NCBI GenBank assembly: GCA_002269645.1
Contig: NIVC01001338.1
Span: 62,001 to 126,000, forward strand
Reading direction: 5' to 3'
DNA from: Macrostomum lignano
Taxonomy: Eukaryota
Length of the DNA: 64,000 nucleotides
Shown here: positions 10,703 to 56,611 of the stretch, one piece after another
How positions within the stretch are numbered: position 1 is the stretch's first letter
Layout: every line of letters starts with the position of its first letter
Notes under the pieces: generated by a model
Seen by the model: the letters and a program-made list of their open reading frames with translations, nothing else
What the model was told of the DNA's origin: nothing
Database searches by the model: none
Translations under genes and position numbers: made by a program

Positions 10703-10829
10703 CTGCTGGGCATGCCAACAGCACAAAAATGCTAGTTTGAATTTATCGAAAACGAAAATTTATTGTATAAACAATTGTCAAGTCAATTAAACAGCGCTAC
10801 AGTTGCAGTCTTTGTAGAAGCGTGCATTT

Positions 10830-11260: not shown

Positions 11261-11559
11261 GAGAAATATTGGACAGTGAAGATAGTAGGTAAATGGGAGA
11301 AGTAGACCGGTAGGTAACAGATAAACGAGCTGGCTAAGAAAATATCAGGGAGTGAAAAACTCTATCAGCGCATATAACGGTAAATGGGTTTAAAAACGCA
11401 AACGATAAGCATGCAACATAAGGCTCTGATCTGAGGCTTACAGTTAACTTAAATCTCCACAAAACACTGTACAAGCCCAGCAAAGAGGAAAAACGGTAAC
11501 TAAGGAGGAAACCAAAAGCAGACAGAAACTCCACAGCATTATAACCTTTCATACAGCAC

Positions 11560-12964: not shown

Positions 12965-13011
<47 letters not shown>

Positions 13012-13061
13012 GTCTGTCTGTCTGTCTGTCTGCCTGTCTGTCTGTCTGTCGTCTGTCTGTC

Positions 13062-13100
<39 letters not shown>

Positions 13101-13177
13101 GTCTGTCTGTCTGTCTGTCTGCCTGTCTGTCTGTCTGTCGTCTGTCTGTCGTCTGTCTGTCTGTCTGTCTGCCTGCC

Positions 13178-13210
<33 letters not shown>

Positions 13211-13308
13211 GCCTGGTCGTCTGTCTGTCTGCCTGTCTGTCTGCCTGTCTGTCTGTCGTCTGTCTGTCTGTCTGCCTGCCTGCCTGCCTGTCTGTCTGTC
13301 TGTCTGCC

Positions 13309-13344
<36 letters not shown>

Positions 13345-13407
13345 GTCTGTCTGTCTGTCTGTCTGCCTGCCTGCCTGCCTGTCTGCCTGCCTGTCTGTCT
13401 GCCTGCC

Positions 13408-13450
<43 letters not shown>

Positions 13451-17205: not shown

Positions 17206-18492
<1,287 letters not shown>

Positions 18493-34765: not shown

Positions 34766-35151
34766 TTAACAGCTGTAGCAGGGACAACGTTCGTCCACAT
34801 AATTGCTGTAATACTTTTGTTCGCTGACGCAGTACCTGCGGTAGCGACCGCCTTGATGGATGCAGTGGATTGTACAGATGATTTCCCAGGTGTTTCTAGG
34901 GTCTGAAAAAAACACAAATAGTTTACTAGGCATTGGTTAGAAAGATTTAGAAAGAATTTTGAAACATTTGCATCTTTAGTCCGACTCTAAAAACGGTTCA
35001 ACTTACACACGACATTGCTGGGCAGGCGTCTCTTGTTGGCCAGGTGGTCGCTAGCGGCCGGTTCAATCAGCGGATGGTTCCTGCTGATAGGCGAGGCACT
35101 AGAAGCAGCAAAGCCCAACAGACAGACGGTACCAAGCAGCAGCAGATTCAT
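34766..35151 (-). CDS. Small secreted Cys-rich defensin-like peptide precursor (93 aa)
   Basis: Exon 35151-35007 (145 nt, donor GTAAGT), 104-bp intron, exon 34902-34766 (TTTTTTCAG acceptor). Translation: MNLLLLGTVCLLGFAASSASPISRNHPLIEPAASDHLANKRRLPSNVVYPRNTWEIICTIHCIHQGGRYRRYCVSEQKYYSNYVDERCPCYSC*. Confidence 0.8.
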
Positions 35152-38100
35152 GCTAGATCTTTCGAATTGAGAGGTTGCAGTTTTGCCAAGTTATCTTTGC
35201 GAGTGTTGGCTCCGCTCTCCCGGATCTGCCGCTCCGCTTAAAAACGCAGCCGGGAATCACGCGCCTGCCAAGTGCTGCGTCGGCGTTGCCAATCGTCGGC
35301 GCTGAAGCTGGATCGAGTTGGAAGCTCAAACAAACCTACACCAATTTCCATGAAGGTACCAGCATGGAATTGGCGCCAAAATGGAAGCTTGCCATTGTAA
35401 TTGGCGCCGCCTTCGCGGGTGCTCTTCTACAATCGCGCGTAAACGGTAATTATAAGCAATCAAAAACGCCTACGTATCTTCAGCTGCAGAAGCAGAGTGA
35501 GGGAGCGATCGGATGCCTGCATCAGCTTAATTTGAAGATTAAAGAGTCGGCTCGTCCTTAGAAAATTCTAGAACAGTGTTTACACAGGGAAGCTGCAGCT
35601 TTACTTGTAAACAAGAGTCACCTCGCCCCTCTGGGCCAAGGCGGCCCTGGTGCAAGTAAATGCATGCACAGAGCTGCTTTCCAGCGGTCAAGACGGATGT
35701 CCGGGACGTGAGCCGCGCTTTCCTGCTGCAGGAGCCAAAAGGACCAAACGAAGCACCGCATCATCAAGCAAGGGACAACTGGCAACCCCGTGGAATCCAC
35801 TGACTTCACTGACGGGTCCCAAATCAACTCTGCGTCTGGCTGTGGCTATCGCCGGAGTCCGGGGGGATCTGTGGCAAACTTCCCAATGTTCTTCTAACTG
35901 CACATTGAACACAATCAATGACGTAAGAGTCAGATGCGTTTACCGCTGAGATAAGGCACTCGCCCAGAGTCGGGTAATTCTAGCACACGACCAGGCGTCG
36001 AACGGCCGCGGATTGGACAGCCGGTTGCGAGGAGATGAATCAGTTCTTGTCCTCCCTTTCTCTGCGTGGGAAAAACTAAAAGACACCTGCACACCAGAAT
36101 CAGGGAGCACTGGCTCAATTAACCGTTGGCAATCCAAACTCACCTCTTAGATTGCAGCAGTTGCTCCAATTGTAAAGCTGAGGAATGCTTCAAAGACATT
36201 GACCATTGCTCATTTGACTGCATTAAATCTCAGTCCCCCAGCCTAACACTCAACTTCAATATACGAGCGTAGTAGTGGCGCTGGTCATGTTCTCGGCGTG
36301 TTCTAAGACATTCTGTGTAGTTGGCTGCAACCCAAACCACCCGTCCCTGTGGACCTTGCCTTTCGATTACGGACTAAATTTATATAAATGTCATCACATT
36401 CATTCACTCGCAACCTACTCGTTAGTAATTAAATAAACCTCAACATGCACACTGTAGTGCGACACGCGTTATTTTCATTAAACCAATGTTGATTTTCGGT
36501 TTCCTCTTCTTGCTGCTTGCCAAGCGAGCTAGCTTACAAGATCACGGATAATATTCTTACTTATCTACTAGTGCCCTGAATTTAGTCGCACGAATTCTAG
36601 CATCGCGACAATGCAGCAGAATCTTTTTGTTCAGCGTTTTCTGACTTTGATGTATCTCTCCATCAAACTATATACTTAGCTTACAGCAACAGTCAATAGA
36701 AGCGAGTAAATTGGAGTCAAAAAGACAACTTTTGACTCCAATTTGGAGTCAAAGACAAACAAAGTCGACAATTTTTTTCAACTGAATGAAAAGCAGAAAA
36801 ACAAGCACATGACAAACGACTGTTTCAAATGCAGATTTTTAAAAGACTCGCTATGCGCAGTGTCGCTTTGCGTCTATTCAGTGAGTGAGGAGCCATTGGG
36901 ACAGAACAACAACTCTCAGAATAGAGAATAATAGATTTTTGTCGGGGGGCTGCTAGCCAGACAATGGTGGATCCTGCATCCTGGATGCTGAAACAGAAGA
37001 CATATCTTAACTACAGAGCTGAAAGCAGAGACAATGCAGTAACCAATTAAATGACTGATTGTGCCGAACTCAAATGCAGCGCTGGAAGCGCCTAACGGAT
37101 CAACACAGTTTTTCCTCACAAAGCAAAACAACTCAAAGACTCGCTTTCTTGATCTGCACGGCATCTGTGAAGTCATTGCTATGCACTTTTGGTGACAATA
37201 ACACGCGCGTGGGATGCGTGGTAATGTCATTTTGGATATAAACACGAAACGGCAATTTGAACAATAACAAAGGGTAAATTTTATTTTTTGATGTTAGGTA
37301 GAAAAACATCAAAAACTGTTCAACAAAGAAATCGCATGTTAATCAGTTAATACCAGGCCTACACAGTAACGTCACTCAGAAAGAATATCAATCAGATTTC
37401 GACTGCCGCCAATGGTCACTTTCATCTTCTTTGACGGAGCAGCCTGCACACGTAGTGCGCTGTCGGTCTGGACAGGCTCTTGATAAGCATCCGCACATTC
37501 TTCCAATGTAGCTTCGCTTATTGTGGTTGGAGTTTGGACGAGCAAGCTTAACAATCTCATTAGTTTCGGAAACTGTATGATTCAGCGCCTGATCCACAGC
37601 CAGAGATGCCCTATACAAACTGCGATCACGACGCCTTGCAATAAGTAGCGTTTAACAGTTCGCTCACACTTTTGCCCAGTGATGAGCAAGATCTCCTGGA
37701 TAGTCTGGCCAAAGGCATCCTACAGGTGGCACGCTCTAGTTACTCTGCAGTTTAAAAGAAAAGTTGGCAACTGATTTGTCTAGATGCAAATGTGTTCACA
37801 GAGAAACATTATAATTATGGTGGGCAAAAGTACAGGTCAGACTACCTACCATTTGCAGCGGTCGGTTTACACCTTAGTAAGGCCTGCTTTCTCACTGACG
37901 TTCTTCATAAACTCAAGAAGATAGCGAAAGCCTCTAGCAGTTTTCTCGGAGAATCTATAGCGGTTCCCGTCTCGACTGTCTAATGGCTTGGGCATGAATG
38001 ACGTGCAAATCAAGTCGAACTCGCCGGATGTTACTCCTGAAATCTCACCATTCGGTATTGCTCCGTAGTTAACTAGAGGAAGCAGAACTTCTGCCACTGT

Positions 38101-39054
38101 AGTTGGCTCTGCGTCAGCCATGGCGATTTCGTTTGTGTAAATGAAAGATCCAAGCAATCAAAGCTACTACGTCTTTTTCTACTCAGCTCTATTAAACCTT
38201 CCCTCTCTTTATGGGATTGTAGTAGGGCATTATTTTAGGAACGGGGAATTTTGCAGGTTTAAATATGCTTTTACCCTACTATCAGTAGTCAACCCGGGGA
38301 AATAATTAGCGGCAGGGTTAAGTGGATAAAATTGGGGTTCCTTTAGAACTACAGAGCAGTTGGGCTCTTGGGAAAGAAAGTGTCTTCGAACTTGAAAAAT
38401 TCACAAGAAAAGCGGTAAGAAGGGGAAATAAATAAAGAAATATAATTTAGGCTTGCACAGAGGAGTCTTGCCTCTAATTCTATAACTGGGAGTCTTGCCC
38501 AAGCACTATAGCGGGAATAAGGAAATAGGGAATTAATGTAAAAGCAAAACTAACTTTTGTACCGTAATTCACTTTTTTTTATTATTAAAACTTTTGTACT
38601 AACTAAATCTAAATTGGTGTCCTGACTCAGTTCTTTAAACCTAAAGCTAGAATTAGGGAACAGCAGGAACCTGGTGGCAGCGAACTACCAAAAGTCTCAA
38701 CCAGTAGGAAGTAAAATCCACTAGTAAGAATCCTTAGCAATACAAACCAGTAGCCTAACCGCAACCACGTCCATCCCAGGATCAAAAAACTACAGTTCGT
38801 ATTAATGTCGATGTGGACCATAGACTAAAATTTATTTACATTTAGTTAATGGTAGAAAGTGAGGGCTTCGCCCCCACACCCCCATTCTCACTCTCCCCCA
38901 CCTCGACTCCTTCCGGCGTCAACTAATGCCATGCCATAGACGAAAGCGCATAGCAATGTTTCTACTGCACTATTTTTGAGTGTTAATGTCATTACCAGAA
39001 GAATATATCATTGTAATTATACTTTTACCCAGACGCAATGAAAAAATATTTTGG

Positions 39055-39907
39055 CCATTATTCCACAGTTTTGATGTGTACCATAGACATTTGGATTGAA
39101 AAAATCCATCGCTCAGTATTTTTGTTAATAAATACAGAACAACAAGAAGTAAATGAACTAAAAGAAAAAATCATTAAAACTAAAGTACCAGCTACACGAA
39201 AAGAGTTAATAATAAATGTCACAGCTAGTGCAGTTCATCAGTTTGTAGCCGAAATTTGACAATGTAAAAATCAATTTGTCACCCAAAGTGAAACATGCAC
39301 AGTTCTCAAAGCCGCAGTTTCCAAAGATGCTCGACACTTTAGCCTGATGATTTGGCACTGCAAAAGGAGTTGGTCTATGTTGAATGTTTTCTATGAAAGA
39401 GAAATACAGGTGCTCAAGTATAGTTGCCGAACTTACCATTTGAAAGATGCACGACTTGGTTAAGTTGGCATGAGACTGATGAGCTTCGTCTGATGAGCTT
39501 CTTTGGTACCGCAGTATCCAAGCTGGGATTCTTTGGGACTGTCGGCTGCTCGACTGAATCGATTGGCCGCTTTCAGGCATCGTTTATAGCCGTCGAGGCG
39601 TTAAGGACTGCATGGTCGCGTTTTCTTCCTAGGTAGCGCCGCACGGTTCGTTCAGTCGTCGACAGGAAGATTTTTTCAATTAATAAGCGCGGCTGTTTGA
39701 CGAGATGCACCAGCCATGGTTGTTTGACAAGACAAATAGCTTTTTCTCCCACTACTCGCTTTCCTGATTTCTTGCAAGACGCAAGCAAAATCAGCACTCA
39801 TCACAGTGTTGTCTATGGTCAAACTAAGCCACACAACTCAGTCGTCTATGGGTAAAACAACTCTTAAAACAGCCAATTGAAGCATGATAAAAAGTGTGGA
39901 ATAATGG
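39055..39907. mobile_element. Putative non-autonomous DNA element with 13-bp terminal inverted repeats
   Basis: CCATTATTCCACA (39055-39067) and TGTGGAATAATGG (39895-39907); inverted CCATAGAC/GTCTATGG motifs inside; an HTH-like fragment STTERTVRRYL on the minus strand. No TSD confirmed. Confidence 0.4.
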
Positions 39908-40140
39908 ATAAATAATCAGCGGTCCCAGTGCGTGATAACGCGTTTGTCTGGCGAGCGCCGGTAGGCGCGAGCCATAGACAAATCGTTGTCACGTGCTGCG
40001 ACCGTTGATTCTTTGCATTGTTTTTCTGTTTGACGATCCTACAGACAATGCATTGTTTGTAGTAGTGGATTGCTCTGCATTAAAAATGTAAATAATGACC
40101 GTCAAATTGCTAAACAATGACAGCGACAAAAGTGTGGAAT

Positions 40141-40276
40141 AATGATAGATTGTGTATATGGTTTTGGAGGTAGACAATGATAAATTTTAGTCACTCGTGG
40201 CTAAACCACTTGGCTTCGCCACTCGTGAAAAATGTATCATTGTCTACCTCCAAAACCATATACACAATCTATCATT
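40141..40276. repeat. Perfect 42-bp inverted repeat with a 52-bp spacer (palindromic MITE-like element)
   Basis: 40141-40182 is the exact reverse complement of 40235-40276; the spacer contains CACTCGTG twice and GGCTTCGCC. Confidence 0.9.
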
Positions 40277-40553
40277 GTCAAGCGTATTGAAGCGGCAGGA
40301 CAACCAAATGCTGATGGGGCTGCTAATGATCGAAGCAGATCAGCACAGCACGTACAGAAATCGTTAAAAGTGTCACGCCTCATTCAACAGAAATCTGCAA
40401 GCATTCACGCCAAATTGAAAAGCTGGAAACTGCAGCATAAATAAAAGTCACTCCAGACACAAAATCTGCGTCTCCAAAAAAATTCTGGCCTTCCGAGAGA
40501 AAAATCAGTCTATTCGTCATAACCTAGAGGAAAGTCATCAATTGCCAGGAGAA

Positions 40554-41480
40554 ATGACTGCGGTTCTCACCTCTTGCTGCTGGCCTTCACTACTTGTGCT
40601 TTGCCTTCTCTGCCACCCGTCTCTGCCTCGTCAGTCTGGAGCTGGAAGCCGGTTCGCGGTGACCTCGCCGAGTACAGGGTTCTGTCAACGTTTAAGACTA
40701 ACAGCAAGTCGTCTGTATTAGCAAATTTCAGGCGGCGAAGGCTCATGTGGTGTCTTACGACACTGCATCGGGCGACTGCACCCTGCTGGAGTGTGACCGT
40801 GGCAGCAGAGACAACTGCAGAAAGTGCCGGCACGATGGAAATCCGAGTTTACCGATACTCTGGGTGAGTGAGGCGTTTCTGTGAATTACCTTGATGCGCT
40901 GTGTGAGTGAGCTGCGTATCTGTCAGTTGCCTTCCTTTGCCATGGTGGCACTCTGGAAGCACCAGATAGCTTACATCTGTTCCATACCCTCCAATCGCAG
41001 GTCGATCAAGGAGCCGGACAGCTGCTGGCAGATCTTCCTACACAGAGTCGACCGCGACTCCGTCAGCTTCAACCGGAACTGGTCGGAGCACGCGAGCAGA
41101 TTCGGTCAGGGCGAGAGTCGAAACTACTGGATGGGTCTGGAGCAGCTCCTGCACCAGCTCACTAATTGACTGGAGTGTGGAGAGTCCACTGGGAGTTCAG
41201 CGACTGGGATGACAACTGGTACCTGGGCTGAGATGATCCCTTCTCTGTTGGCCCAGCTCTGTTGGCCCAGCGACCGACAAGTACAGGTGCTCGATGGGAC
41301 CGCTGAACACGAGCAGGTCAAATTTCGGACAACGAACCACATCAAATCATGTAATGAACATGCAGTTCAGCATTATCGATTCTGATAACGATAATTGGTC
41401 CTCTGGAAGCTGCGCTGATGGTCCTGCTGGTGGTTCAACTGGTGCTCCTTGATGGTGCCCCAGTACAAAATACCTGTACC
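40554..41480 (+). pseudogene. Fibrinogen-related (FReD) secreted protein pseudogene
   Basis: Signal-like MTAVLTSCCWPSLLVLCLLC; intron 40864-41000; FBG motifs WQIFLHRVDRDSVSFNRNWSE..FGQG..NYWMGLEQL, DWDDNWY, GPATDKYR, MQFS.IDSDND...C, WWFNWC spread over several frames with stops. Confidence 0.8.
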
Positions 41481-42543
41481 CACCGCTTTGGCTTTTAATT
41501 TCTATTTCATTCTTTTTCCTATCTTTTTCCAAAATGTTTAAAATAACAGGGTTTTTTTAAAAGTGCCTACGACACTGGGTATCTACTACTATTTGCCTAA
41601 TACCAACCCCGTGCTTCGAGTTTACTACTCCATGAAGAGCTTCGAGGGCATGATTCGTCAGTGACCGCGTGAAACAACGGAAAATTTTTCGGAGCTATTC
41701 AACTCTTAACAGTGATATAGACGGAAGTTATTATATTGCAATTCTTTGAACAACCATTTTACTATCTCTTAAAAAGCTTAGCCTTTTAGTGGGCGCCCCC
41801 GATATTCGCAATGGTGAAATTCAAAGCTTCACTGGATCGTTCTATGAATAAATGCAGGGGGTCCACCAAGTTGTCGTAGTGGTTTAAGTCCTAACCACAA
41901 GTTGCTATTACTAACCTACTTGACCTTATCTCACCTCTGTGGGTAGCCTCAAACTACGAATCTCTTACTAACTGAACGTGTATGGGCTATCGTCAGTACG
42001 ATTTACCCTGGTAGCTACAGTACCCGAGCGGCAAGACAAGGACGACTTAAGTAGAAGGATGGGAAACCTTGTTTCTTAGAAAAATTTTGAAGGCTGCAGG
42101 TTTTTCCAAAAAAACACTACGGAGATAGGAAGTTTTCATTTTTTCAGCACAAAAATTGTTATTGCTTTTGATAGGAGGCAGATCCAGTGTTCATCTTTTG
42201 ATATGTTGTGCCTTTCTTATTGCTCTATCGATATTCATAAAGCTTTTCGTTCAAAAAATTAGGATTCTATGTTAATTTTTTAGGCTACTCTACGTACATT
42301 TTTCTTCTTATTTATTCCCTTGGCCTTGGCCTTGGGCCTTCGTATAAACTAGAAGAGCTTGATCTTTTCTTCTAGTATTAGTTTAACATGATCTAGAACG
42401 TGAATTAGGTGACCAATAGGGGACTAAATAAAAGTTCAAATTCCATCTATCACATTTGCTCTAGATAGCATATAAAGTGTGTTATAGGCATGGCATTATG
42501 AATAGTGTAAGCACTGTAAGACCAAAATAGCCACAATATTGAA

Positions 42544-42835
42544 CAGTGGCAATGCAGGGCACAGGGCTGGGGGGGCAGAGGCCAGAGGGGGCTGCTCCCC
42601 CTGGGTGACCAGTGACCACACCCTCCCATCCCTCCATGGGGTGACCTACCATAGGCCTAGTTTTTTTGTATAAGCTTAGGCCTATAATTAGCATTTTTGT
42701 AAGATTTTTCATGCAATGTGTTAGCGCTAGGCTACTCTAATTCTAGAAAATTTGCTAGAGAAGGGGGTGACCACCCACCATACCATACCCCCTACTTCCT
42801 CTTATAATTGGAGGTGCTATGTAATGCCGCCACTG
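42544..42835. mobile_element. hAT-like MITE, 292 bp, 8-bp TSD
   Basis: Termini CAGTGGC...GCCACTG; ATATTGAA duplicated at 42536-42543 and 42836-42843. Confidence 0.8.
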
Positions 42836-43883
42836 ATATTGAATCTCTTGTTGCTATTATATCTATCTATTCTCTATCTTTAATTTGCAACTTAATATAA
42901 TAGGCCTAGCAATTGTTATATTAATTAAGTATATATTTTAATCATGTATAAATACTATGCAATTATTGAAATAATACAAAATATTATATTATATATAAAA
43001 ATATAACTGCAATAATATATTTAAAACAAATAATCTATATAAATTTTTTAAATTTTCTTTTTAAATTTTATTCCAGGTAGGTTTAGTAATAATATTACCT
43101 AACTAAAATAAGTTTAGCCTAATATGAAGCTACCCTGGTACCAATATTTTTAGTTTAATAATTCAAGTAACAATTAATCAATTTAATTATAAGCTACAAA
43201 AAAACTTGGAATATATCTAGGCCTATAGGCCTAAGCAAGCAACAAAGTGAACAAAGTATTGTGTACTTGGCCTAGGCTAGGTTTTATTTGCTTTATTTAA
43301 TAGATAAATATCTGCAATAAAAGCTTAAGAGAATGCTTTTTGTTTGGTTAGGGCCTAATCCGATTTTATTATAGTAGTACCTATCTAAGATTTGTAGATC
43401 TAGGCCAGATACTATACCCAATTACAATATTTATCATTACTGATAACTGATAAGATATAGGCCCCCTATAGAAATCAATGTTAGGCACCATTAATGAAAA
43501 TCTAAACTTCCATTAATGGCAAAAGTGTTGACTATAGTCTTGACTGTTTAACCAGTTTTAATGAATTTTTTCTATTTCTCTAAATTAGTACACTCAATGG
43601 CAGAGTCAATGGTTTAATACAATGCCAGACTTTTCCGGACGCCCCTCGTATATTAAAATTTGTTAATGTCATTAATCTTCCTATTCTAATCATTTATAGT
43701 ATAATTAAAAATTCACAATTGTAAAATGTAATGGGAAAAATTCTCACCTACTATATTTTTATAGTTGTGTTGTGGCCACAAGAGCAGTTGCTATCTGTAA
43801 GCATATGCAGTGAAAATTTCTGCAGAATAATCATCCATACATGTTTGCAGAAAATTGCATATAACCAACCAATAAGCAAATTA

Positions 43884-46800
43884 ATGGCTCTGCACCGACT
43901 TAGCTCAGCTTGCAATAGAATGTTTCTATCAGCATCAGTAGTGCAGACTGCCAGTGGACTACGCAGCCTGTCATCCGCAGGCGGACTGGCTGACAAATTC
44001 ACCAAGGCGCAGTCAGCTCTGCAGCGGCTCACTGAGGATCCCGGCAATGCTGCCAAGCTGAAGATCTACAGCCTGTATAAGCAGGCCACGGAGGGCAAGT
44101 GCACCAAGCCGAAGCCGGGATTCACCGATTTCGTCGGCCGAGCCAAATGGGACGCTTGGAGCGGCCTTGGGGACATGACCAAGGATCAGGCTATGCAGCA
44201 GTACATTGACCTGGTGGAGTCCATGGGCGGCAAGCTGGATGCTCCCGATACTACTGCCGATACTACTAATCCCGCCGATTCTAATACTGCGTCTGCTGAT
44301 TATAAGGTACAAGCTTATTGATTGTGAAATCTTTATTAAAATAACTGCATTTTTTGTTTTGCTGAAGATTTTTTGTCTGAAGATTTTCTAATGACATTTC
44401 TCTGCAAGATTAGCTGTCATGCGCTCACTGATAGGCAGCTTGCTCTGTAGCTGGCGCCCCCTCTGTAGCTGGCGCCCCCTCTGTAGCTGGCGCCCCCTCT
44501 GTAGTTGGCGCCCAACAACAACAACAAACAACAAAATACGCTGTCATGATGGTAAAAGTCAGCGTCACAGGGCGCGCTTCATGGCTTGGGCGCGAACAAA
44601 GGCCGCGCCACCGGCAGTGTCCGGGGCGCCGGCGTCAGCCAGCAGACAGTCGACATAACGCCGAGTTCGCGCTTGACCTCGCCGGTAGGGTGCCTGCAGC
44701 GTGAGCAGCAGCACCTCCTGCACCGGCTGTGGGCAGTACGACTCGGCGCGGATGAGATGGCCTGCGAGCTGGAGTCGCCGACGGCGCAGTAGATCACTTG
44801 GACGTGGCAGGCCAGCGCGGCGATAGAGTGCCGCGTTGGTGACTCGCTCGACGCCGATGTTGAAGGCGGCGCGCAGCAGACCAGCGTGCGCCGCATCGAC
44901 TTGCTGTTCGAGTGAGTCCGTCAGCGTCCAGGTCTCGGCGTTGTACAGCAGGACGGTCTCGATTACCGCCTGGAACAGCGCCGCCCTCTGGCGGTCCGGT
45001 AGGGCCTCGGACTGCAGGACTGCCCTCACAGAACGAAAGGCAGCCCAGGCAAGCCCGCGGCGGCGTCGCAGGTCCTCGCGAGCGTCTGGAACCAGACCGC
45101 CGAGGTAGACGAACTGCTGACATCGCGGGAGTTCGGTCGCCTGCCCGTCAGCGCCTCGGCAAAATATTGCAGCCTCGATGTCGTCCGGCACGCAGAGCAC
45201 AACGGTCTTCTGCGTGTTGACCACCAGGCCGACACTCGCCGCAACGGCAACCAGCCTGTCCAGCTGCCGTTGGGCGCCCTCGACGGTCGAGGACAGCAGG
45301 GCGAGGTCGTCGGCGTAGCCGACCAGTTGGCGCCCCCTCTGTAGTTGGCGCCCCCTCTGTAGCTGGCGCCCCCTCTGTAGCTGGCGCCCCTCTGTAGCTG
45401 GCGCCCCCTCTGTAGCTGGCGCCCCCTCTGTAGCTGGTGCCCCCTCTGTAGCTGGCGCCCCTTCTGTAGCTGGCGCCCCTTCTGTAGCTGGCGCCCCCTC
45501 TGTAGCTGGTGCCCCCTCTGTAGCTGGCGCCCCTTCTGTAGCTGGCGCCCCCTCTGTAGCTGGTGCCCCCTCTGTAGCTGGCGCCCCCTCTGTAGCTGTA
45601 GCTGGCCCCCTCTGTAGCTGGTGCCCCTTCTGTAGCTGGCGCCCCCTCTGTAGCTGGCGGCCCCTCTGTAGCTGGTGCCCCTTCTGTAGATGGCGCCCCC
45701 TCTGTAGCTGGCGCCTTCTCTGTAGCTGGCGCCCCTTCTGTAGCTGGTGCCCCCTCTGTAGCTGGCGCCCCTCTGTAGCTGGCGCCCCCTCTGTAGCTGG
45801 CGCCCCCTCTGTAGCTGGCGCCCCCTCTGTAGCTGGCGCCCCCTCTGTAGCTGGCGCCCCCTCTGTAGCTGGCGCCCCCTCTGTAGCTGGCGGCCCCTCT
45901 GTAGCTGGCGCCCCCTCTGTAGCTGGCGCCCCCTCTGTAGCTGGCGGCCCCTCTGTAGCTGGCGCCCCCTCTGTAGCTGGCGGCCCCTCTGTAGCTGGCG
46001 CCCCCTCTGTAGCTGGCGCCCCCTCTGTAGCTGGCGGCCCCTCTGTAGCTGGCGCCCCCTCTGTAGCTGGCGGCCCCTCTGTAGCTGGCGCCCCCTCTGT
46101 AGCTGGCGGCCCCTCTGTAGCTGGTGCCCCCTGTGTAGCTGGTGCCCCTTTAGTTGGCGCTCCTGGATATAGTTGGATTAAGTTTTAACTACTTTAACTA
46201 CTTCTAGCTACTAGTTGTAAAAATAAATTTAAGAACTATAAAAAGGGTCCGAGCGAGGTCTGTTTTTACATACGACATAATTATGTTTGCATGCACTCAA
46301 GGTTCAAATATCCGAATCTCAGTTACTGCAGCAATTCTCATTCGCATTGGTTTAAAAGACAATAAATGAAACGTTGCATTTTTAGCACTAAAAGTTTGTT
46401 TTGTCTTTATTTTTTTGGCGTTAATTAAAACCAAGATCTAACATTAACAACATCTAAGGTCAATTGAGAGGATTCCAATATTTACAATATATAAAGATTG
46501 TTAAATTTTCATGTTGCTACTGTAAGTAGACGATTGCGCAGAAACTTTATTATGTATTTTTATTTACTTTCAGGAAGCTCTAGTATCCATCTCGCCTAGC
46601 GGGGTGCTTTGGTTCACCCTGAATCGGCCAGCCAAGAAGAATGCCATCTCAACCGATCTATACGCTGAATGGTCCAAAGCGATGGAGCAGGCCGCCGCTG
46701 ACGACAAGGTCAAGGCTATGGTCATCACCGGTGCCGGGGAGTATTTCAGCTCCGGCAACGATTTGTCCAGCTTCACCAATTTAAAACCCGGCGTCACCAT

Positions 46801-46981
46801 GGAGCAGATGGCCGCCGATGGTAACGCCATTTTGCGTCGCTTTGTTGCGGCATTTATCGACTTCCCCAAGCCGTTGATTGCGCTGGTTAATGGGCCCGCG
46901 GTGGGCATCTCTGTGTCCACGCTGGGCCTGTACGATCAGGTGAGTCTTTTGAGAACTGGGCGCATTTGTTGGAAATAAGTG

Positions 46982-47045
<64 letters not shown>

Positions 47046-47985
47046 CAGATAGATAGACAGATAGATAGATGCAGACAGGTAGGTAGATAGTTAAGCTTTA
47101 ACAATAAAGTCAATTAAATTCCTACTCCCTAATCGCAGGTGTTCGCCTCCGACTCAGCCACATTCCACATGCCATTCTCCTCGCTGGGCCAAACTCCCGA
47201 AGGCTGCTCCTCCTACACCCTGCCCCGCATCATGGGCCTGCCGGCTGCTGCCTCCCTGGTCATGTTCAACCGGAAGATCTCCGCCCAGGAGGCGCTGTCC
47301 TGCGGCCTCGTTAGCCGGGTCTTCCCGGCTGCCTCCTTCGCCGCCGAGGCCGGCGCCGCAGTTGAAGAGATTGCCGCCCTGCCCAGACAGGTGAGCGCCG
47401 GTCATCTGCTAATTTTTGCTTAACCGATTTGTTCACTGGATGCACTGATCTCATTAATTCAATTTTCTGCTGCGGAGAGCTAGCTAGCTTAAAATAGTTT
47501 TCAGATTTTTAGAAGCCTACTGTTGTAACTTTTCTCTCCCTTCCTCTCCTATCTCCCTCTCTCCCTCTCTCCCCTATCTCCCTCTCTCCCTTCCTCTCCT
47601 ATCTCCCTCTCTCCCTTCTCTCTTATCTCCCTCTCTCCCTTTCTCTCTTATCTCCGTCTCTCCCTTCTCTCTTATCTCCCTCTCTCCCTTTCTCTCTTAT
47701 CTCCGTCTCTCCCTTTCTCTCTTATCTCCCTCTGTCCCTTTCTCTCTTATCTCCCTCTCTCCCTTTCTCTCTTATCTCCCTCTCCTTTCGTCTCCCATCT
47801 GCCTCTCTCCCTCTTCTATCTCTTTGCAGACGCTAATTTACGCCAAGCAGCTTTTGCGAGAGCCAATCAGAGCGGAGCTGCACGCCACCAACGAACGGGA
47901 GTGCAACCGGCTGCAGGAGCGCTGGATATCCGAGGACTGCTTCAATGCTGTGGCGAAATTTTTCTCGCGAAAGTCTAAGCTTTGA
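43884..47985 (+). CDS. ECI2: Enoyl-CoA delta isomerase 2 (ACBP + crotonase domains), 398 aa, PTS1 SKL
   Basis: Exons 43884-44306, 46574-46939, 47139-47390, 47830-47985 (all phase 0). [34 protein letters not shown]; crotonase [52 protein letters not shown]; ends FFSRKSKL*. Confidence 0.97.
44435..46150. repeat. 18-bp minisatellite (CTCTGTAGCTGGCGCCCC) interrupted by the LINE
   Basis: About 4 units left of the LINE and about 45 units right of it. Confidence 0.95.
44514..45324 (-). mobile_element. 5'-truncated RTE-clade LINE inserted in ECI2 intron 1
   Basis: Open RT C-terminus [58 protein letters not shown]..; (TTG)n-like tail at 44514-44534; 11-bp TSD AGTTGGCGCCC at 44503-44513 and 45325-45335. 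Confidence 0.92.
46978..47095. repeat. (GATA)n microsatellite in ECI2 intron 2
   Basis: Seen directly. Confidence 0.97.
47530..47820. repeat. Pyrimidine-rich repeat (TCTCTTATCTCCCTCTCTCCCT) in ECI2 intron 3
   Basis: Seen directly. Confidence 0.9.
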
Positions 47986-48412
47986 TGCGTTGGGAGTGAC
48001 AAGCAGTCGCTGGGGTGTGAACTTCATTAAATTAAAGCAATTGATTTATCATGGTAATTTTGAAAAAAAGAATTCGAGCATATGGATACTAGTAATGAGT
48101 GTATGGTTTTGTTATATTTTTACTAGTAGCAAGTAGCTTTTTTAATTTCCATAATCATTTCTGCTTGATCTTCTGGTTTTTTTGTAGCGCGAACGCGAAT
48201 ATTACACAAAAACACTTTAAAATGAAATAATATAAACTGATTTGTGCCTGATTTCACTGTGAATTAGATATTAAGAAGAATCATAAATGAAAAATATTTT
48301 TTCCTCTTTGTTTTTAGGAACACGTTTAAATTTTTTTTCAGGCATTATTTCGGGAAATCCTTGGGAAACCAGTCGGCTTATGTTAAAGACTGAGCCACAC
48401 AAGCTGCTCTCT

Positions 48413-50703
48413 CTATGAAATATGATTCCAATTTATGTTGTCCAGTTCCATCTGAAGTGCCAACATTGTTGGACTGGTGTGGTTCGCTAGCTGGTTAAAT
48501 AGCTGCTCAGCGCAATGTCGCACTGACTCAGAAACACCAATGTTGCTGCTGTTGCCGCAGCTGCGACTCGGCGAGCAATCTGGCAACAGGCTAATAATGA
48601 GCTTCTGCTCAGCAACCCACGCTTCAATGTCAGTCTGCGACCATTTATCACCGGCTGCAGTTTTCTGGCACCAGAGTCGGATTGAATCGATGCAACTAAG
48701 CGTCGAATCACTGTGTTGCACTGCCTGACTAGCCGCTCTGATGCTGACTGCCTTGAGTACAGCGTTCGTCACCAGATCGAATGAGCTTGAGTCTATTTGG
48801 CATTTACTAGTATCCGTCTTGACAGCTTTATCGAGCACCCTGTAAGCCATCAACGTGGCCAACTGCAATGACGAGTCAAGAAACGGCGCATAGAAGTGCA
48901 CAGGAAGTTGAAATTCTTTTCCGCTAGATCTACGAGTAGATGGAAAAGTCGTTGCTAAAGCCGATTTGGTGAACAGTTGCAGAGCCTCGCGATCTTCTGT
49001 GCCACCCCGAGCAGCCATGACCGTCAGCATCGCCCTCGTGTGCCTGATAGTCGACAGAAGATCCAGTAAAAAATCTGCTTGGTCGTTTAAACTTAGGCCG
49101 TCGTAGAGCTTGGCTAGAAGAGTTTCTGAAGGTACACCGCTGGCAGTCTTCAGGTTGATTCCCGCTGGCAGACGGTGCTCGAAAGCCCGACTCGCAACTG
49201 CCGGCATCGCAAATCGGACAGCTCGAGCGCAGGATTCGACCTGCGTCAGTCGGCCCTTGTCGCTGCTGCCCAGCAAAAAGCTTCTCAATCGTCCCGCGCC
49301 CTCAATAAATGCTAGACCGATCAACGTGTCGGGGTCTTGGGCTGTCAGCAGTCTCAGACGTTGCCGCATAACTTCCAGTCGTCCGCGTACGCTAATAAAT
49401 CCGAAACGACCGTCCACGCTTACTACAGTTCCGGTCCTGCTTCCGCTTGGTTGGGACGCTTTGACCGCTGCTGGCAGTTGGTCTAGTTGGAAAGCTTTCC
49501 AGCCGCGTTCACCGCTCGGAAATAAGTCTACCAGGTCTGACAGCAGCACAGGTTTTGTGACGTCTGCATAGTGCGGCGCGTTTTTGGTCAAATTAAAAAT
49601 ACGAGCGTACATATTAATGATGCTCCTATAATTATTGCTGTTTTCCCACTTACTGCCTTCATCATCTCGCCGTTCTAATTGATTGAGCTGCAGTCTCAGA
49701 CTGACAATTCGATCGGCTATGACTCCTGGCAGGCCGCGATCGACTCGTTCAAACGCTGATGCTGCTTCTATTCGATACGCCCAAGCGCTTGCCATTAAAA
49801 AACAAAGACAGCAAATGTAAATGCGTGTATCGCCAGGCAGATTATAAAGTTAAACGCGACATTAACGAAATCCGAAATTTCTTACTTATCATCTACATCA
49901 CTAGCATAAGTCGACATCTCAGACGCTTGCAGTCTTAGCGGCACAGTTATGTAATCGGCAGCTGGGTAAGTTGCGAGTTCGACTCCCGCCGGTAGGCCCA
50001 ATCCCGCCAGGTAGCCTAACAGTCGCTCGGACGCTTCACCATTCCTAGGCTTAGTGAATCGAGTGCTCAGCAGGCCGGTGTGCCTTCCTAGTAGGCGAGC
50101 CAGAGCCGGCTCCACCGCGATTGCCTCTCGTCCGAACAGGTCTCTGGCGGGGCTGGACCTCATGCATGACAGCGCCAGACTTGAGGCGGCTCGCATCCAA
50201 CTCTTGGCGCTAATTGAAGGCTCCGGTCTAACCAGCGCTTCAATTAGCGCGCTAGCGGCTTGCTGTTGAACCAAGCGCAACCGATCAACGCTGCCGTCTT
50301 TAAATCCGGTGCCTTCAACGCTCCACTGTAGGCTAGCGACTCGCTGGAAACTGCGACACACTTGCAGCGGCTCGTACTGGCTGCAGTTGTCAGCCCCAGC
50401 GAATCCCTTGAATGATTTTTGATCGACTACTTGCAAGGCACTTCTATTAGAGATCTCTGACTCCTTGTGACAGTCGATCCTGCCGATGTAAAATGCTGAG
50501 AGAGCCGCGGCTGCAGCCGACAGGAGCACCGTCAGAATGGCTCCCAGTAGCAGCAGACAGGCTGTCAGTTTTGAACGCTTACGACGAACTGGGAGTCGTT
50601 GAATATCGTCATCGGATTGACTTAATCTAATCGAGACGTTGTTATCCTCATCCTGATTTGCTTCGTTTCTGGTGTGTAACGTTGGCGTCCTGAAAATTGA
50701 CAT
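48413..50703 (-). CDS. Divergent neprilysin/M13-like type II membrane protein lacking HExxH (probably 2 exons, 730 aa)
   Basis: The 273-aa and 460-aa ORFs join through a 98-bp intron (donor AA|GTAAGA at 49885, AAG acceptor at 49788). Cytoplasmic tail, RRKR, TM helix, then M13-like landmarks in order: VCRSFQRVASLQW, ALSCMRSS, ESCARAVRFAMPAVA, LPVHFYAPFL, LMAYRVLD (HExxH position), SKC, RLWCQ, PDCSPSRSC. Confidence 0.6.
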
Positions 50704-51222
50704 AATTTAAGCTTCTAATACGAGCATAGACGCATCGAAAGTATCAGTTGTTTTGTTTTATAATCAGCTTTGAGGCGATAGAAGCTGATTGGCTCTGCTT
50801 TAGATTCGCCCCAAATCAAAGCCTCGGTGACTGCTGAATATTTTGAATTTTAACGAATCTGGTATTCAGCCTTTAGGCACGAGACAGCCTAACGCATCTT
50901 GGTGACTGTGCAGTTAATTTAAATATAAATTGCATCGTCATGGCTATACATATATTCCCATCAGCGCGCTTTGCTTGCTAAAAAATTGAAGTAGCTGGAG
51001 AGCTTTTTTTACGGAAAATGCGTGCATGCCTTTGTTAGAAATATTAATCTAAGGCTTTTCGTCAGAAAAATAATTTCCTGTTTTTAATTACTTCGTTATT
51101 GATCCTGTCTTCCAAGTCCTCAGTCACAAAATTACCTTGGTTGTGACTCGGAATTTAATTAAAGAATGCGTTTCACTTTATTCAATAGTAATTTTTATCG
51201 ATTTTCCATGTTGATAACCTAA

Positions 51223-51580
51223 GGGGGGGCCGTAGCCCAGCGGTCTAGCGCAGGCTCTGGTGTGCCAGCAGGCTCGATTCCAAGTGCAGTCACATTAATT
51301 TGGGGCTGAATTGGAATCTCGGCTTGGCTCTGCTCGTGCAATTAACGGCCTTGAGAGCCAACCCCCCAAGGCGCAGTGAAGTGTACATGCCTAACGATAA
51401 AATAAAGTTAGGGCCGCTGTACACTCCTGTGTCAGTGTGTGCCTGCGTACGTATCCGCGCGCTTGTGTGCCTGCTCAGGGGAGTCGGCGGAATGGGCAGT
51501 AATGCCTCTCGCCGGTTGTGTGCCTATGTCGCTTAAAGTGCGCCAGGGTGCACACAACCCCCCTGCCTCTAATAAAAAAA
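51223..51580 (+). mobile_element. tRNA-derived SINE
   Basis: A box TAGCCCAGCGGTCTAG; B-box-like GGCTCGATTCC (51271-51281); A-rich tail AATAAAAAAA; TGTTGATA on both sides. A second GGCTCGATTCCAAG fragment lies near 51650. Confidence 0.7.
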
Positions 51581-53921
51581 TGTTGATAGCCGGGGGGGGG
51601 CAGAGCTGCTCCGTTCAAACGCGTCTGAATCTCGCTCTTAAGTCCTAGGCTCGATTCCAAGCACCCCAAAAGCAGTTAATGGGGCTCATGCATAAAAATG
51701 GTTTGTCCTTCTCAACCCTTAAGCACTGTACGAGTACAACCTCTGTGAGTTCGTGTTTGCGTACGTTTCCGTGTGCACACGTGTGCTCAGGGGTCAGCGG
51801 ACCGATGTTTGCATGGCAGCCTTGACTAGCGGTAGTGTCATAGATAAAGGAGTCCTTGCTTCGAGAAGACAGTCCATGGACAGCGCAAGTTGTCAAACTA
51901 GATCGATGAATTTATAAGCCAGAAAGTTCCTAACAGAAATCCAATCGATATTTATTCAACTCAATTTCATAGTGCACTTGATTCTGTGAAAACTCCATTA
52001 ATAAGAAGAATCGAAGGCATATTTCTCTCTCGCTAAAAAAATTACCTAGTGTGTAAAATTATTTTTTTGCTGTTCAATGCAACAGTTAAACTACTTAAAT
52101 TTAGATTATAGATACACTTGTTCCTGTAACACTCATCTACTTATATGAGTAGCGTGGTTAACATTTTGTTGTTCTGCTTTGGTGCTATGCTCCTACAGTA
52201 CCGGTACATGTATGTATGCAGTATAGTATATAGTTAGTTGGCTTTTAGCCACCCAGTTGCAGCATCTTTCGGTCAAACAGCTTACAAACAGTGGTAATAA
52301 TTTACAAATTTTATTACCTGCCATACACTTTGGACAAGCCTGTAGAGCAATGCCGAAAATCAAGAATTCGTGTCCATATCGCGTTGTCAGCTGCACCTGA
52401 TGTACAGTATGTACTCGGATGTACAAACTTACACAAGATGTACAGTGGCCCTCTGACTTTCTTTCCGTCAGGAAGTCTACTAGAAATCATAATGTGCTGT
52501 GTCTGGGTTGGCTCAAATGAGCAAAGATCGCTACGACAAGCTCTAGGCCTATTGCCGGTCTAGGCACTTAATTAAGAAATTAATTTCGCCACAGGTGTAT
52601 AGCCGAACTCGGGTACTTTTCACACAATGGCTTCAATTCGAAGAGAAACATTGTCGATCGGGAAAGTCACTCGCACGACAGCGTGTAGGAGGTAACAAGG
52701 GAAAGCTCGTGCTCATTTACATTTTAAGATATCAAGCTTTAGACTGTTGAGCCATCGGTTTGGAGGTTTAATCAAAATATTTTTAAGACTCGAGTGCATG
52801 CACTCAAATCAACAGGTACACAGCCCATGCACTGATTACTTTGCCGGGCTCATTTGGAGGCTTTTGAATCGAAAAAGCACAAAACTTCAAACTAAACCGC
52901 GGGTGAAAAATTAATTAAAGGCTGTTTTTCTACACCGAATGCATTTTTTTGTTTACTATTTCCGTAATGCTTCTTGCTGTTGCCCAAAAAAGGAAGATAA
53001 ATTTCGTGCTGAATATCTAATATCTCCTTCAGCACTATTTTATAATTTGTTTTTATGTGCACGACGCTTCAGTTTACACCAGTATCTAATATTAGGTATG
53101 GAATTTTCTACTGTCAAAATTAGGGTCAGAGTAAACCCGATCTGCGGCAATGGCAAACCTGCTGCCTCCAAAAGCTTTCCAAGAAACGAAGTTTCCCGTA
53201 GTTACTTGAGTAGTCATTGGTCATGACTTTCTTCAGATTGAGCTTTATTGCGTGTGAGCATGTCAATGCATGCAGAAAATATTTTGGTAATTCCTGATTT
53301 AATCCAGCCTACGCTCGTACCGAATATGGAAAATCGCGAGCTCAACGAGGCCCCAATTCTGGAGTAAGCTCAATTTTTGACTGTCAACTGCCCTGGGGGT
53401 TTTAAAAATTACTTGACTCGAATTGTTTAATGTTTCCAATGCTATCTATACGACGTAAATGCACTTCTGCAGTATGCTGCGTGCGTTTTACTCGTAGATT
53501 TGAAAGACATTCATTTTAGAATACATCGTAGTATGTTGCATCAAAACACGGACGTTGTCAAGAATTTTTTTATCGTTAAGGGGGCGCCAGCACCAGGGGC
53601 TTTAGCACCAAGGGCGCCAGCACCAGGGTCACCAGCACCGGGGTCACCAGCACCGCATCCTGGCTACGACACTGCATCAGAGCTGCCTGAATTAATATAA
53701 ATGTAGGAGAAAGCTAATGTTGATCTGGATTCTTTTTTTATTGCAGCACTGTTTCATAGAAATTTGATGCAAGAACAATAAGAGCAATTTAATTCAATTA
53801 ATCAAAAAAAGCAATTCTAATTTCCTTGGATGACTCTGGTCCAATTCTCGCGAATTCAAGCAATCAGTGTCTCATCTGGCTGGCCTCATCCGGATTGGCC
53901 CGCAACTGATGTGGACTTCAT

Positions 53922-53929
53922 TATAAATA
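53922..53929 (+). promoter_or_regulatory. Candidate TATA box of the second defensin-like gene
   Basis: TATAAATA 120 bp upstream of the ATG; CCAAT/ATTGG at about 53841 and 53894. Confidence 0.4.
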
Positions 53930-54041
53930 CTCGCATAGGTGTGACTCTGCGTCCGTACTGCATCTGACGTACTCAAAGCAAAACCTTGGATTTTTCAGTA
54001 ATCTTTTTCCTGTCTCAATCAGTTCTGATACTAATTAGCCA

Positions 54042-54542
54042 ATGCATTCGTCCACTACAATACTGGCAGCTTGCCTTGTGCTGGTGCTAATCAGCGTTGA
54101 CTATCAGGGTGGCGGAGTTAGCGCCACACCTTTGGCTAATAAACCTGGCGAGATGCAAACTCGACAAGTCAACAAAAGAGTTTTCTGTAAGTAATAAAAC
54201 CAACTGGTTTCAGATTTTTATTTTGCCAGGCAGTCGATCGATAAGCTAAGCCAACAACCCCACGCTGCGTGCTAAATGTACATTTAGCTGACAATGTACA
54301 GATTGTAGGGTAGGCAGAAATTCTCTGCTATCTCACCCACCTCCCCACTGCGCGCTGAATGTACATTGAATGTACACTCGGAACTTTAAATGCCAATTTC
54401 TACCTACTTTCCAGATTTTCACACGGTTTTTCGCTACTGCACCCGCCGTTGTCGTCAGCACTTTGGCGTCACCGCCGGCTGCGTTGGATACCTGAACATG
54501 CCTTTAGGCACATGCGACTGCGTCTGTTCCAACTATCCTTGA
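54042..54542 (+). CDS. Small secreted Cys-rich defensin-like peptide precursor (90 aa)
   Basis: Exon 54042-54186 (145 nt, donor GTAAGT), 228-bp intron, exon 54415-54542 (TTTCCAG acceptor). Translation: MHSSTTILAACLVLVLISVDYQGGGVSATPLANKPGEMQTRQVNKRVFYFHTVFRYCTRRCRQHFGVTAGCVGYLNMPLGTCDCVCSNYP*. Confidence 0.82.
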
Positions 54543-55204
54543 CCTTGAGTCGCAGCCACAGCTGGCCATGACAACTAAAATTAATATAATTAAACATCAA
54601 ATTTGCTAATTTCAAGTTGCGATGGAAATTTACACAACAACGAAGTTGACTGTGCTGTTTGCAGTCTGTGATTATAAGAAAATTGCAATGTTAAGATTGA
54701 GAATGCCGTATTTAAGCAGAATTTTGCAAATTTATGTTACCTTTTAATTCAGAGCAGAAGAACTAAATATACGAACGTGCAATCATAATTACATACAAAT
54801 AACAAATTTCAGAGGGACCCTAAGTCCCAAATTAGGCAAGATGGCTTTAAAACAAAAGAATGCATTAAGGTGTCTCTTTTATCTTTTATCTTTTATTTAA
54901 TCTCTTTTTTCTTTAAATCAAAAATGCGTTTCGCAGAATTTTTTTAGCATAAACAAAATCTGATAGGTTAAGTTAGGTTTCAGATTTTTTGGCACTTAAA
55001 CTTGCAGCATTTCAATTTTTAGGCTTCAGAACAGAACTGCGAATGAGGCGGCATGTAGCTGCTTTGTTCAGGGTTGAATTCACGAAAATGGGAAAATGCT
55101 TTAACTGAGGACTGGTAATACGTATTGTAAAACACAGCTTCTGCAGATTAAATACGAGCCAGATAAAACAGCTTTTATCAATGAAATAAGGCCGGTAGGG
55201 TTGC

Positions 55205-56015
55205 CAATCAAGAGACAGGGGCGCCTATCAAGAGACAGGGGCGCCTATCAAGAGATAGGGGCGCCAACTAAGAGACAGGGGCGCCAACTAAGAGACAGGG
55301 GCGCCAACTAAGAGGCAGAGGCGCCTATCAAGAGACAGCGGCGCTAACTAAGAGACAGAGGTGCCTATCAAGAGACTGGGCGCTAATCAAGAGACAGGGA
55401 CGCCCATCGAAAGACAGGGACGCCCACACAGACAGAGGACACCCACCAAGAGACAGGGGCGCCTATCAAGAGACAGGGGCGCCTATCAAGAGACTGGGGC
55501 GCTAATCAAGAGACAGGGGCGCCTATCAAGAGACAGGGGCGCCTATCAAGAGACTGGGGCGCTAATCAAGAGACAGGGGCGCCTATCAAGAGACAGGGGC
55601 GCCAATCAAGAGACAGAGGCGCCTATCAAGAGACAGGGGCGCTAATCAAGACAGGGGCGCTAATCAAGAGACAGTGACGCCCATCGAAAGACAGGGACAC
55701 CCATTAAGAGACACGGACGCCCGCCCAAAGACATGGGCGCCAATCAAGAGACAGGGACGCCCATCAAGAGACAGGGACGCCCATCAAGAGACAGGGGCGC
55801 TCCGCCAAGAGACAGAGACAGAGGACACCCACCAAGAGACAGAGACAGAGGACACCCACCAAGAGACAGAGACAGAGGACACCCACCAAGAGACAGGGGC
55901 GCCAATAAAGAGAAAGGGGCGCCAACCAAGAGACAGGGGCGCCCACCAAGAGACATGGGCGCCAATCAAGAGACAGGGGCGCCAATCAAGAGACAGGGGC
56001 ACCCACCAAGAGACT
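55205..56015. repeat. 20-bp minisatellite (CAAGAGACAGGGGCGCCTAT) with variants
   Basis: Seen directly. Confidence 0.95.
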
Positions 56016-56611
56016 CAAATATTAGATCCCCTGCAGCCCCTTAGAGTTGCAAACCCTGAAAAAAGTCCCAAGCACAACAGTTGAAGACAGGCACGATGTT
56101 TAGCTGATTTTAGAATACTTCGTAATACCACAAATAGCCTTCTATCTCGCGCATGTTGTCACGCTGCAAGCTCGCATGTCTTCAACCCTCTATTTCCTTC
56201 CATGTCCTTTCTCAGTTTTTTCATACCCCTATGGCCACAGTGTCGAGGTTTGACTTTTTTCCCAACTGGATATGCAGGTGCACGAGACCATAGCGCCAAC
56301 AGCTGTCAGGTAGGCAGTTATTCTGCCTCTCCGATCACGGGATTAGGCCGATCTGTGAGAGAGAGCATTATCTGGGATATTGCGAGAAAACAAGGGGCTG
56401 AGTTTTAACGGCCTTGAGACTAAGAATCGATAACTGATCAATCTTTCAATTTCCAATTTCCCCTATGAAGGTAAGGCAACTTACGTACACTAATGGGATT
56501 TCTGCGTTATATAGGCGAAATAATCACTTAGATTTCCCACTGTTTTAATTGATGCAAAATTATTAAACTATTTAATCGTCTGGACAGCACAAAAATAAGA
56601 ATACCACAGGT

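Follow-up and report, generated by a model that had tools for sequence, protein, structure and literature searches.

Linked six-cysteine peptide genes of Macrostomum lignano as candidate divergent CSαβ peptides of a flatworm

Do flatworms have peptides of the cysteine-stabilised αβ (CSαβ) type? A screen of 33 flatworm genomes by BLAST and hidden Markov models (HMM), in which the present assembly (Mlig_3_7) was included, concluded that such peptides are absent and described this absence as "surprising" (Irvine 2023, PMC10414684). The question is raised anew by two small genes of Macrostomum lignano, here called gene A and gene B, which lie on opposite strands of a stretch of 64,000 nucleotides (contig NIVC01001338.1, positions 62,001 to 126,000; hereafter the window). 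Each encodes a precursor with a six-cysteine domain. Together with a third gene, Mlig029134 (A′), we read them as a small, lineage-restricted and divergent CSαβ family of expressed two-exon genes whose products are most likely host-defence effectors, a reading that we hold to have about an even chance of being right. The defensin-like character of the peptides, in the sense of a three-disulfide α-β-β arrangement, is moderately supported for B, where it comes from a predicted model, while the case for A is weak.

Gene models, earlier records and family extent

Both gene models were rebuilt from the raw sequence of the window and bear out the two-exon design that an earlier note on this DNA had described: a first coding exon of 145 nt, a phase-1 intron opening with GTAAGT and splitting a Tyr codon, and a second exon in which six Cys are spaced as CxxxC-x9/10-C-x10/14-CxC-x1/2-C (Table 1). 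The product of gene B has 90 aa (...QVNKR VFYFHTVFRY-C-TRR-C-x9-C-x10-C-D-C-V-C-SNYP) and that of gene A has 93 aa (...LANKRR LPSNVVYPRNTWEII-C-TIH-C-x10-C-x14-C-P-C-YS-C). The N-K-R site that was thought to close the first exon is present in both genes, but it lies a few codons inside that exon, at residues 44-46 in B and at residues 39-41 in A, where R42 follows. A six-frame regular-expression scan found the Cys pattern at exactly two sites in the 64 kb, namely loci A and B, and at none in 100 block shuffles; a CxxxC with a downstream CxC is carried by A, B and A′ alike. It is also true that both genes are invisible to the open reading frame (ORF) track. Taken singly, their exons are ORFs of 50-55 aa, and for this reason a listing of 60-aa ORFs misses them.

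What did not hold is the description of the two genes as unannotated. The product of B is identical to PAA69243.1 and that of A to PAA69241.1, both of which GenBank labels "hypothetical proteins" on one contig of 310,638 bp in assembly GCA_002269645.1. The M. lignano annotation in GenBank was built from genome-guided RNA-seq transcript assemblies and not ab initio (Wudarski 2017, PMC5730564); the spliced structures of A and B are therefore transcript-supported by way of the annotation. In UniProt and UniRef, the g2 and g3 copies of B carry the name [quoted passage not shown], which implies a match of Mlig034330g2/g3 to the PROSITE profile PS51378, and the g2 and g3 copies of A are called "ShKT domain-containing protein"; the g1 copy of either gene is "Uncharacterized". 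These automatic names are inconsistent among copies, even among those with identical mature domains, which points to profile scores near the threshold or to changes from one database release to another.

Both genes also appear in a published table of antimicrobial peptide (AMP)-like sequences. Table S5 of Irvine 2023 (PMC10414684) lists Mlig034330g2/g3 as fAMP-LP 149, at the step "Same genome", and Mlig033545g3 as fAMP-LP 530, "Ungrouped"; the copies of both A and B are scored Y for a signal peptide, and 54.5% of the AMP predictors are positive. Because they came from a single genome or were ungrouped, A and B were discarded before prioritisation in that study. No earlier description treats them as one family or assigns them to CSαβ.

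The family is small. Two single-sequence searches, one profile search (in a collection of 5.8 billion proteins) and one exhaustive HMM search (1.84 billion representatives) returned three gene clusters only, all of M. lignano: Mlig034330 (B), Mlig033545 (A) and Mlig029134 (A′). Barring one spurious repetitive ORF that matched the leader region, these protein searches gave no relatives outside M. lignano. The third gene, A′, is on another contig and is 52% identical to A; it has a first exon of 142 nt, an 85-nt phase-1 intron opening with GTAAGC, a split Tyr codon (T/AC) and the Cys array of type A. N-K-R is present as well, and does not vary among the members of the family. Two or three near-identical copies were seen for each of the three loci, those of A and B being 95-98% identical and located on two other contigs, NIVC01000440.1 and NIVC01001855.1, which represent the known duplicated blocks of the M. 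lignano genome. On the homeologous contig NIVC01000440.1 the order is that of the window, i.e., A (-), a gene for an ACBP-enoyl-CoA isomerase, and B (+); the locus fetched from NIVC01001855.1 has only A beside the ACBP-ECH gene.

The comparison of A with A′ is informative about selection. The ratio of nonsynonymous to synonymous divergence (ω) is 0.25 in the prepro region, with a nonsynonymous proportion (pN) of 0.17, and 0.40 in the mature region, where pN is 0.45 and synonymous divergence (dS) is saturated. All Cys are retained, and the introns are just 61% identical. The divergence between A and A′ is that of a real gene under purifying selection. Such a pattern, with a conserved leader and a mature peptide that evolves fast, is commonly met in families of AMPs or other host-defence peptides and of toxins.

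It is barely conceivable, in our view, that A and B are non-functional, whether as transcribed noise or as an annotation artefact. The homeologs do differ equally in exons and introns (about 2-3%), and most of their coding differences change an amino acid; they are, however, only 5-7 substitutions apart, so that the analysis of selection among them is without power. No copy seen has a broken frame, a lost splice site or a missing Cys, ω is below 1 against the old paralog despite the divergence of the intron, the promoter is conserved, and the models derive from RNA-seq.

Cysteine framework and fold

The Cys array of the family can be placed in the ten-Cys scheme of Tarr 2016 (PMC5116183), in which the helix staple consists of C3-C8 and C4-C9, the fold is completed by C2-C6, and a further bond, C5-C10, occurs in mollusc defensins and nematode ABFs. 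Of these ten Cys, the flatworm peptides have C3, C4, C6, C8, C9 and C10, and C2 (in the n-loop) and C5 (in the loop) are missing; the usual N-terminal Cys is absent and an extra C-terminal Cys is present, just as the earlier note had it. Since C2 and C5 are not each other's partners, their absence leaves C6 and C10 unpaired, one on either strand of the hairpin. We consider that these two probably bond with each other, which would give C1-C4, C2-C5 and C3-C6 in the numbering of the peptides themselves. This proposal agrees with the pairing put forward in the earlier note and adds to it a route from an eight-Cys ancestor: a defensin of the mollusc/nematode type would have lost C2 and C5, with a C6-C10 bond replacing what was lost.

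The evidence on the fold is best for B. A single-sequence AlphaFold2 model of its exon-2 product has a mean predicted local distance difference test score (pLDDT) of 79, with a helix at residues 2-16 that bears the CxxxC and two strands, at residues 20-25 and 35-39, that bear the third Cys and the CxCxC. The strand limits of this model are compatible with Cys22 facing Cys37, as the proposed C6-C10 bond would have it. When the model was compared with the Protein Data Bank (PDB) by Foldseek, the scorpion β-toxins Cn2 and CssII took ranks 1 and 2 and the fungal defensin eurocin took rank 4, all of them CSαβ peptides. Alignment of B with the verified sequence of Cn2 gives YC.R.C(K/R)Q.(F/Y)G..AG over the helix and loop, with eight identities in 15 positions. 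The match spans about 20 residues; the toxins, unlike B, are 66-aa peptides with four disulfides that begin with a β-strand and end in a long tail.

For A, the evidence comes from sequence profiles. Aligned with the verified sequence of the mussel defensin MGD-1 (PDB 1FJN), all six Cys of A fall on C10, C14, C25, C33, C35 and C38 (hhalign P=0.0013, probability 18%), and the spacings CxxxC-x10-C and CxCxxC are identical in the two peptides. A combined profile of A and B against five verified defensins reached P=0.00036 and a probability of 37%, which exceeds the result for either gene alone. Its score was exceeded by none of 60 shuffles of all columns and by one of 60 in which the Cys were held fixed. 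In a separate comparison with seven verified CSαβ peptides, residue shuffles with fixed Cys reached the real score in 17 of 1000 cases for B and 18 of 1000 for A, and in 377 of 1000 for A′.

Several results weigh against the proposed fold and role. The hhalign probabilities are low (1.6% for B alone against the five defensins, 18% for A, 37% for the combined profile), and most of the signal is the Cys framework itself. The Foldseek E-values of 0.8-4.3 for the B model are not significant, the comparison with Cn2 was picked after the fold search, and the single-sequence AlphaFold2 model of A (pLDDT 58.7) has two strands and no helix, its Foldseek matches being meaningless. A Pfam scan of both precursors gave no defensin, toxin or ShK match at E<=10, and sequence searches of the PDB with the precursors, the mature B peptide and the A-type profile gave no match; the screen of Irvine 2023, this proteome included, did not recognise A or B as CSαβ. 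No mature peptide has a Cys N-terminal to the CxxxC, which rules out the C2-C6 bond that defines CSαβ, and the GXC γ-core is likewise missing (B has TAGC and then CVG, A has RRYC, A′ has YSRC). Strict membership in CSαβ is therefore not established. A and B have no significant similarity to each other in protein (BLASTP E=6.5) or DNA. For defensins, the flatworm peptides carry little net charge, +0.8 to +2.8 against +5.9 for MGD-1. A literature search by gene ID and the supplements of M. lignano RNA-seq studies, PMC7336406 among them, yielded no data on expression, infection or activity.

The one match that the Pfam scan of the precursors did return, to a viral peptidase, was sub-threshold, and we discarded it as spurious.

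Comparison with known systems helps to locate the differences. Molluscs and flatworms both belong to Lophotrochozoa. MGD-1, the oyster defensin Cg-Def (2B68) and the nematode ABFs are, like A and B, small secreted peptides encoded as precursors. This eight-Cys type needs C2-C6, C3-C8, C4-C9 and C5-C10, whereas A and B have six Cys only and the equivalents of C4 and C21 of MGD-1 are not Cys. The third bond therefore differs, the hairpin loop has 10-14 residues in the flatworm peptides instead of 7, and the GFGC N-terminus of the eight-Cys defensins is absent. The precursors also differ, in that the flatworm ones have an N-terminal propeptide with KR and those of mussel CSαβ AMPs (mytilins, PMC7168163) have an anionic C-terminal extension. 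Six-Cys defensins of insects and fungi (PF01097, PS51378; plectasin, eurocin, micasin) share with A and B the CxxxC...CxC staple and a length of about 40 aa, and with the predicted model of B the α-β-β core; however, they have the n-loop Cys of the C2-C6 bond and no Cys after the CxC, and A and B show the reverse, the Pfam model matching neither. A published precedent for a rewired array is ASABF-6Cys-α of Ascaris suum (Tarr 2016, PMC5116183), a six-Cys CSαβ peptide in which, as in the flatworm peptides, the Cys that are lacking do not bond with each other, so that rewiring is implied. It keeps C3-C6, C8 and C9 and is without C2 and C10, whereas the flatworm peptides are without C2 and C5; the likeness drawn here is one of Cys array.

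The UniRef name of Mlig033545g2/g3 raises the possibility that A-type peptides are ShKT-domain peptides, and the C-x10-C segment of A, with its basic and Tyr residues, does align to C17-C28 of ShK. We regard this as highly improbable. The framework of ShK (1ROO) is C-x8-C-x4-C-x10-C-x3-C-x2-C, against C-x3-C-x10-C-x14-C-x-C-x2-C in A; two of the six Cys align (hhalign P=0.27, probability 0.2%), Pfam has no ShK match at E<=10, and the A-type profile finds no ShK in the PDB. The ShKT identity of A was rejected on the Cys framework.

Are A and B kin at all? In the absence of significant similarity, their kinship rests on gene architecture, Cys framework and linkage. The earlier note had seen one design in the two loci, and as regards architecture and Cys order this stands, with A′ as a third locus, even though sequence similarity does not extend from A to B. 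An alternative, which that lack of similarity favours, is that the A-type (Mlig033545, Mlig029134) and B-type (Mlig034330) genes are unrelated orphans that encode Cys-rich secreted peptides and happen to be neighbours, only B being CSαβ-like and A having another fold. MAFFT applied to the mature regions alone sets the Cys out of register (this alignment and a three-sequence one made for the profile search were misaligned and not used), the A model is without a helix, the UniProt labels differ by type, and phase-1 introns after leader exons are common among secreted-peptide genes. We find such an origin quite unlikely. The two genes have in common the 145-nt length of exon 1, the intron phase, the split Tyr codon, N-K-R and the order of the six Cys, and their linkage across the same gene is kept on NIVC01000440.1 as in the window. 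The combined profile moreover beats either gene alone against defensins, and the A model is too uncertain to serve as evidence.

Flanking elements and neighbourhood

The coordinates of both genes and of the elements around them are collected in Table 1. About 170 bp 5′ of the ATG in gene A and A′ hold strongly conserved blocks and a TATA-like box. The promoter and 5′ untranslated region of gene A (window 35160-35330, -) and of A′ (9900-10072 of its locus, L004) have long blocks in common, e.g., GGCAACGCCGACGCAGCAC and GCGCGTGA.TCCC, unlike the intron and the region coding for the mature peptide, which are heavily diverged between the two genes. This suggests that the blocks are a common regulatory element under constraint, as judged from the alignment. 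Nothing like them was seen at gene B.

Table 1. Window coordinates of genes A and B and of their flanking elements; elements given as candidates were called from sequence only.
Feature	Position	Strand	Details
Gene B (BOX15_Mlig034330g1, PAA69243.1), coding exon 1	54042-54186	+	145 nt; ATG at 54042; rebuilt model
Gene B, signal peptide	54042-54125	+	Within exon 1; cleavage after VSA (Irvine S5)
Gene B, propeptide	54126-54179	+	N-K-R at its end; then first 2 1/3 codons of mature peptide
Gene B, intron	54187-54414	+	228 nt; GTAAGT...TTTCCAG; phase 1; splits Tyr49 (T/AT)
Gene B, coding exon 2	54415-54542	+	TGA stop; six-Cys domain C-x3-C-x9-C-x10-C-x-C-x-C
Gene A (BOX15_Mlig033545g1, PAA69241.1), coding exon 1	35151-35007	-	145 nt; ATG at 35151
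Gene A, prepro region through N-K-R-R	35026-35151	-	Then first residues of mature peptide
Gene A, intron	35006-34903	-	104 nt; GTAAGT...TTTTCAG; phase 1; splits Tyr49 (T/AC)
Gene A, coding exon 2	34902-34766	-	TAA stop; six-Cys domain C-x3-C-x10-C-x14-C-x-C-x2-C
Gene A, putative proximal promoter	35237-35290	-	TATA-like TTTTTAAG 35237-35244; block GGCAACGCCGACGCAGCAC 35272-35290; both kept in paralog Mlig029134
Gene A, candidate AATAAA	34584-34589	-	~180 nt past stop
Gene B, candidate TATAAATA box	53922-53929	+	~120 nt 5′ of ATG
Gene B, candidate poly(A) signal (ATTAAA variant)	54589-54594	+	47 nt past stop

Between A and B lies the gene for an ACBP plus enoyl-CoA hydratase/isomerase protein (ECI2-like, 406 aa in the homeologs), which runs from 43731-44321 (+) onward and is adjoined by a G+C-rich stretch (44-48 kb, 56% GC). 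Antisense to this region, a 219-aa ORF at 44565-45224 (-) resembles the remnant of a retroelement and has no Pfam match. Two adjacent ORFs, at 48413-49795 (-; 460 aa) and 49882-50703 (-; 273 aa, with a hydrophobic, transmembrane-like stretch), have no Pfam match at E<=0.01 and possibly constitute an orphan gene in the interval from the ECI2-like gene to gene B. About 400 nt 5′ of gene B, at 53590-53665, there is a short imperfect repeat of the GCACCAG type, the minus strand of which reads as collagen-like Gly-X-Y (GAGDPGAGDPGAGA...); either a microsatellite or a stray exon of collagen-like type could account for it.

At 2950-13800, 23685-24452 and 55674-56084, mini- and microsatellites form dense arrays whose repeats (RVERQI, DRQT and PNPKSQI, among others) produce numerous long but spurious ORFs in either orientation. 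Interspersed with them are genuine genes: a PLAA-like gene (WD40 and PUL; 511-8379, -), a gene with F-box and TRAF-type zinc-finger (12350-14929, -) and an exon of DPCD (17559-18155, +). A further ORF of 192 aa at 22944-23522 (-) is very rich in Gly runs (...GGGGGSF) and has no Pfam match at E<=0.01.

Possible role and significance

If A and B are host-defence effectors with a divergent CSαβ scaffold, their biogenesis can be sketched as follows. Each gene would be translated as a prepropeptide with a signal peptide, for which the copies of A and B are SignalP-positive in Irvine S5, with the predicted cut in B after VSA. A proprotein convertase would then cut the short propeptide after the dibasic N-K-R(R), as the invariance of this site leads us to expect, and release a mature peptide of 44-52 aa. 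The predicted mature peptides are Tyr-rich, with 16-18% aromatic residues, an isoelectric point of 7.8-8.7 and the slight positive charge given above. Three disulfides would hold the peptide, the CxxxC of the helix being stapled to the CxC on the last β-strand. By analogy with known peptides of this kind, the product may act as a secreted effector of host defence; its antimicrobial potential rests on in-silico calls, namely the 54.5% of AMP predictors that are positive in Irvine 2023 S5.

The same scaffold may of course serve another job, e.g., as an ion-channel toxin or deterrent, as a product of glands or seminal fluid, or as a signalling peptide. We deem this unlikely, though it deserves serious attention, and many of our own observations fit it. 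The best matches of B, in fold and in sequence, are scorpion sodium-channel toxins and not defensins; the net charge is low and just over half of the AMP predictors are positive; the dibasic processing site of the precursor is neuropeptide-like; and the mature peptide evolves fast, as it does in reproductive and toxin genes. M. lignano is not known to be a venomous predator, which counts against a toxin or similar use. The supplements of a positional RNA-seq study (PMC7336406) contain none of the gene IDs, and we found no data that place A or B in reproductive, neural or gland tissue. Toxins and defensins cannot be separated by sequence alone (Tarr 2016, PMC5116183).

Returning to the interpretation of A and B as a divergent CSαβ family, the stronger claim would be that they are the first genuine CSαβ peptides of Platyhelminthes and that they embody an undescribed rewiring of the scaffold, in which a C6-C10 bond across the hairpin follows the loss of C2 and C5. 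We advance this claim tentatively and rate it at somewhat under an even chance. A and B are plausible exceptions to the conclusion of Irvine 2023, whose screen missed them as CSαβ because of their divergence. The value of the finding is moderate, given that the genes are already public, the family is tiny and lineage-restricted, and its function is assigned by analogy.

If the claim is true, the published absence of CSαβ peptides from flatworms would be overturned, and the gap in their distribution would be in part an artefact of divergence. The array C3, C4, C6, C8, C9 and C10 would then be a natural case of disulfide rewiring, complementary to that of ASABF-6Cys-α, which frees the N-terminus and possibly alters the target of the peptide. 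M. lignano, which is open to transgenesis and RNA interference, would in turn become a flatworm system in which defensin-type immunity can be tested.

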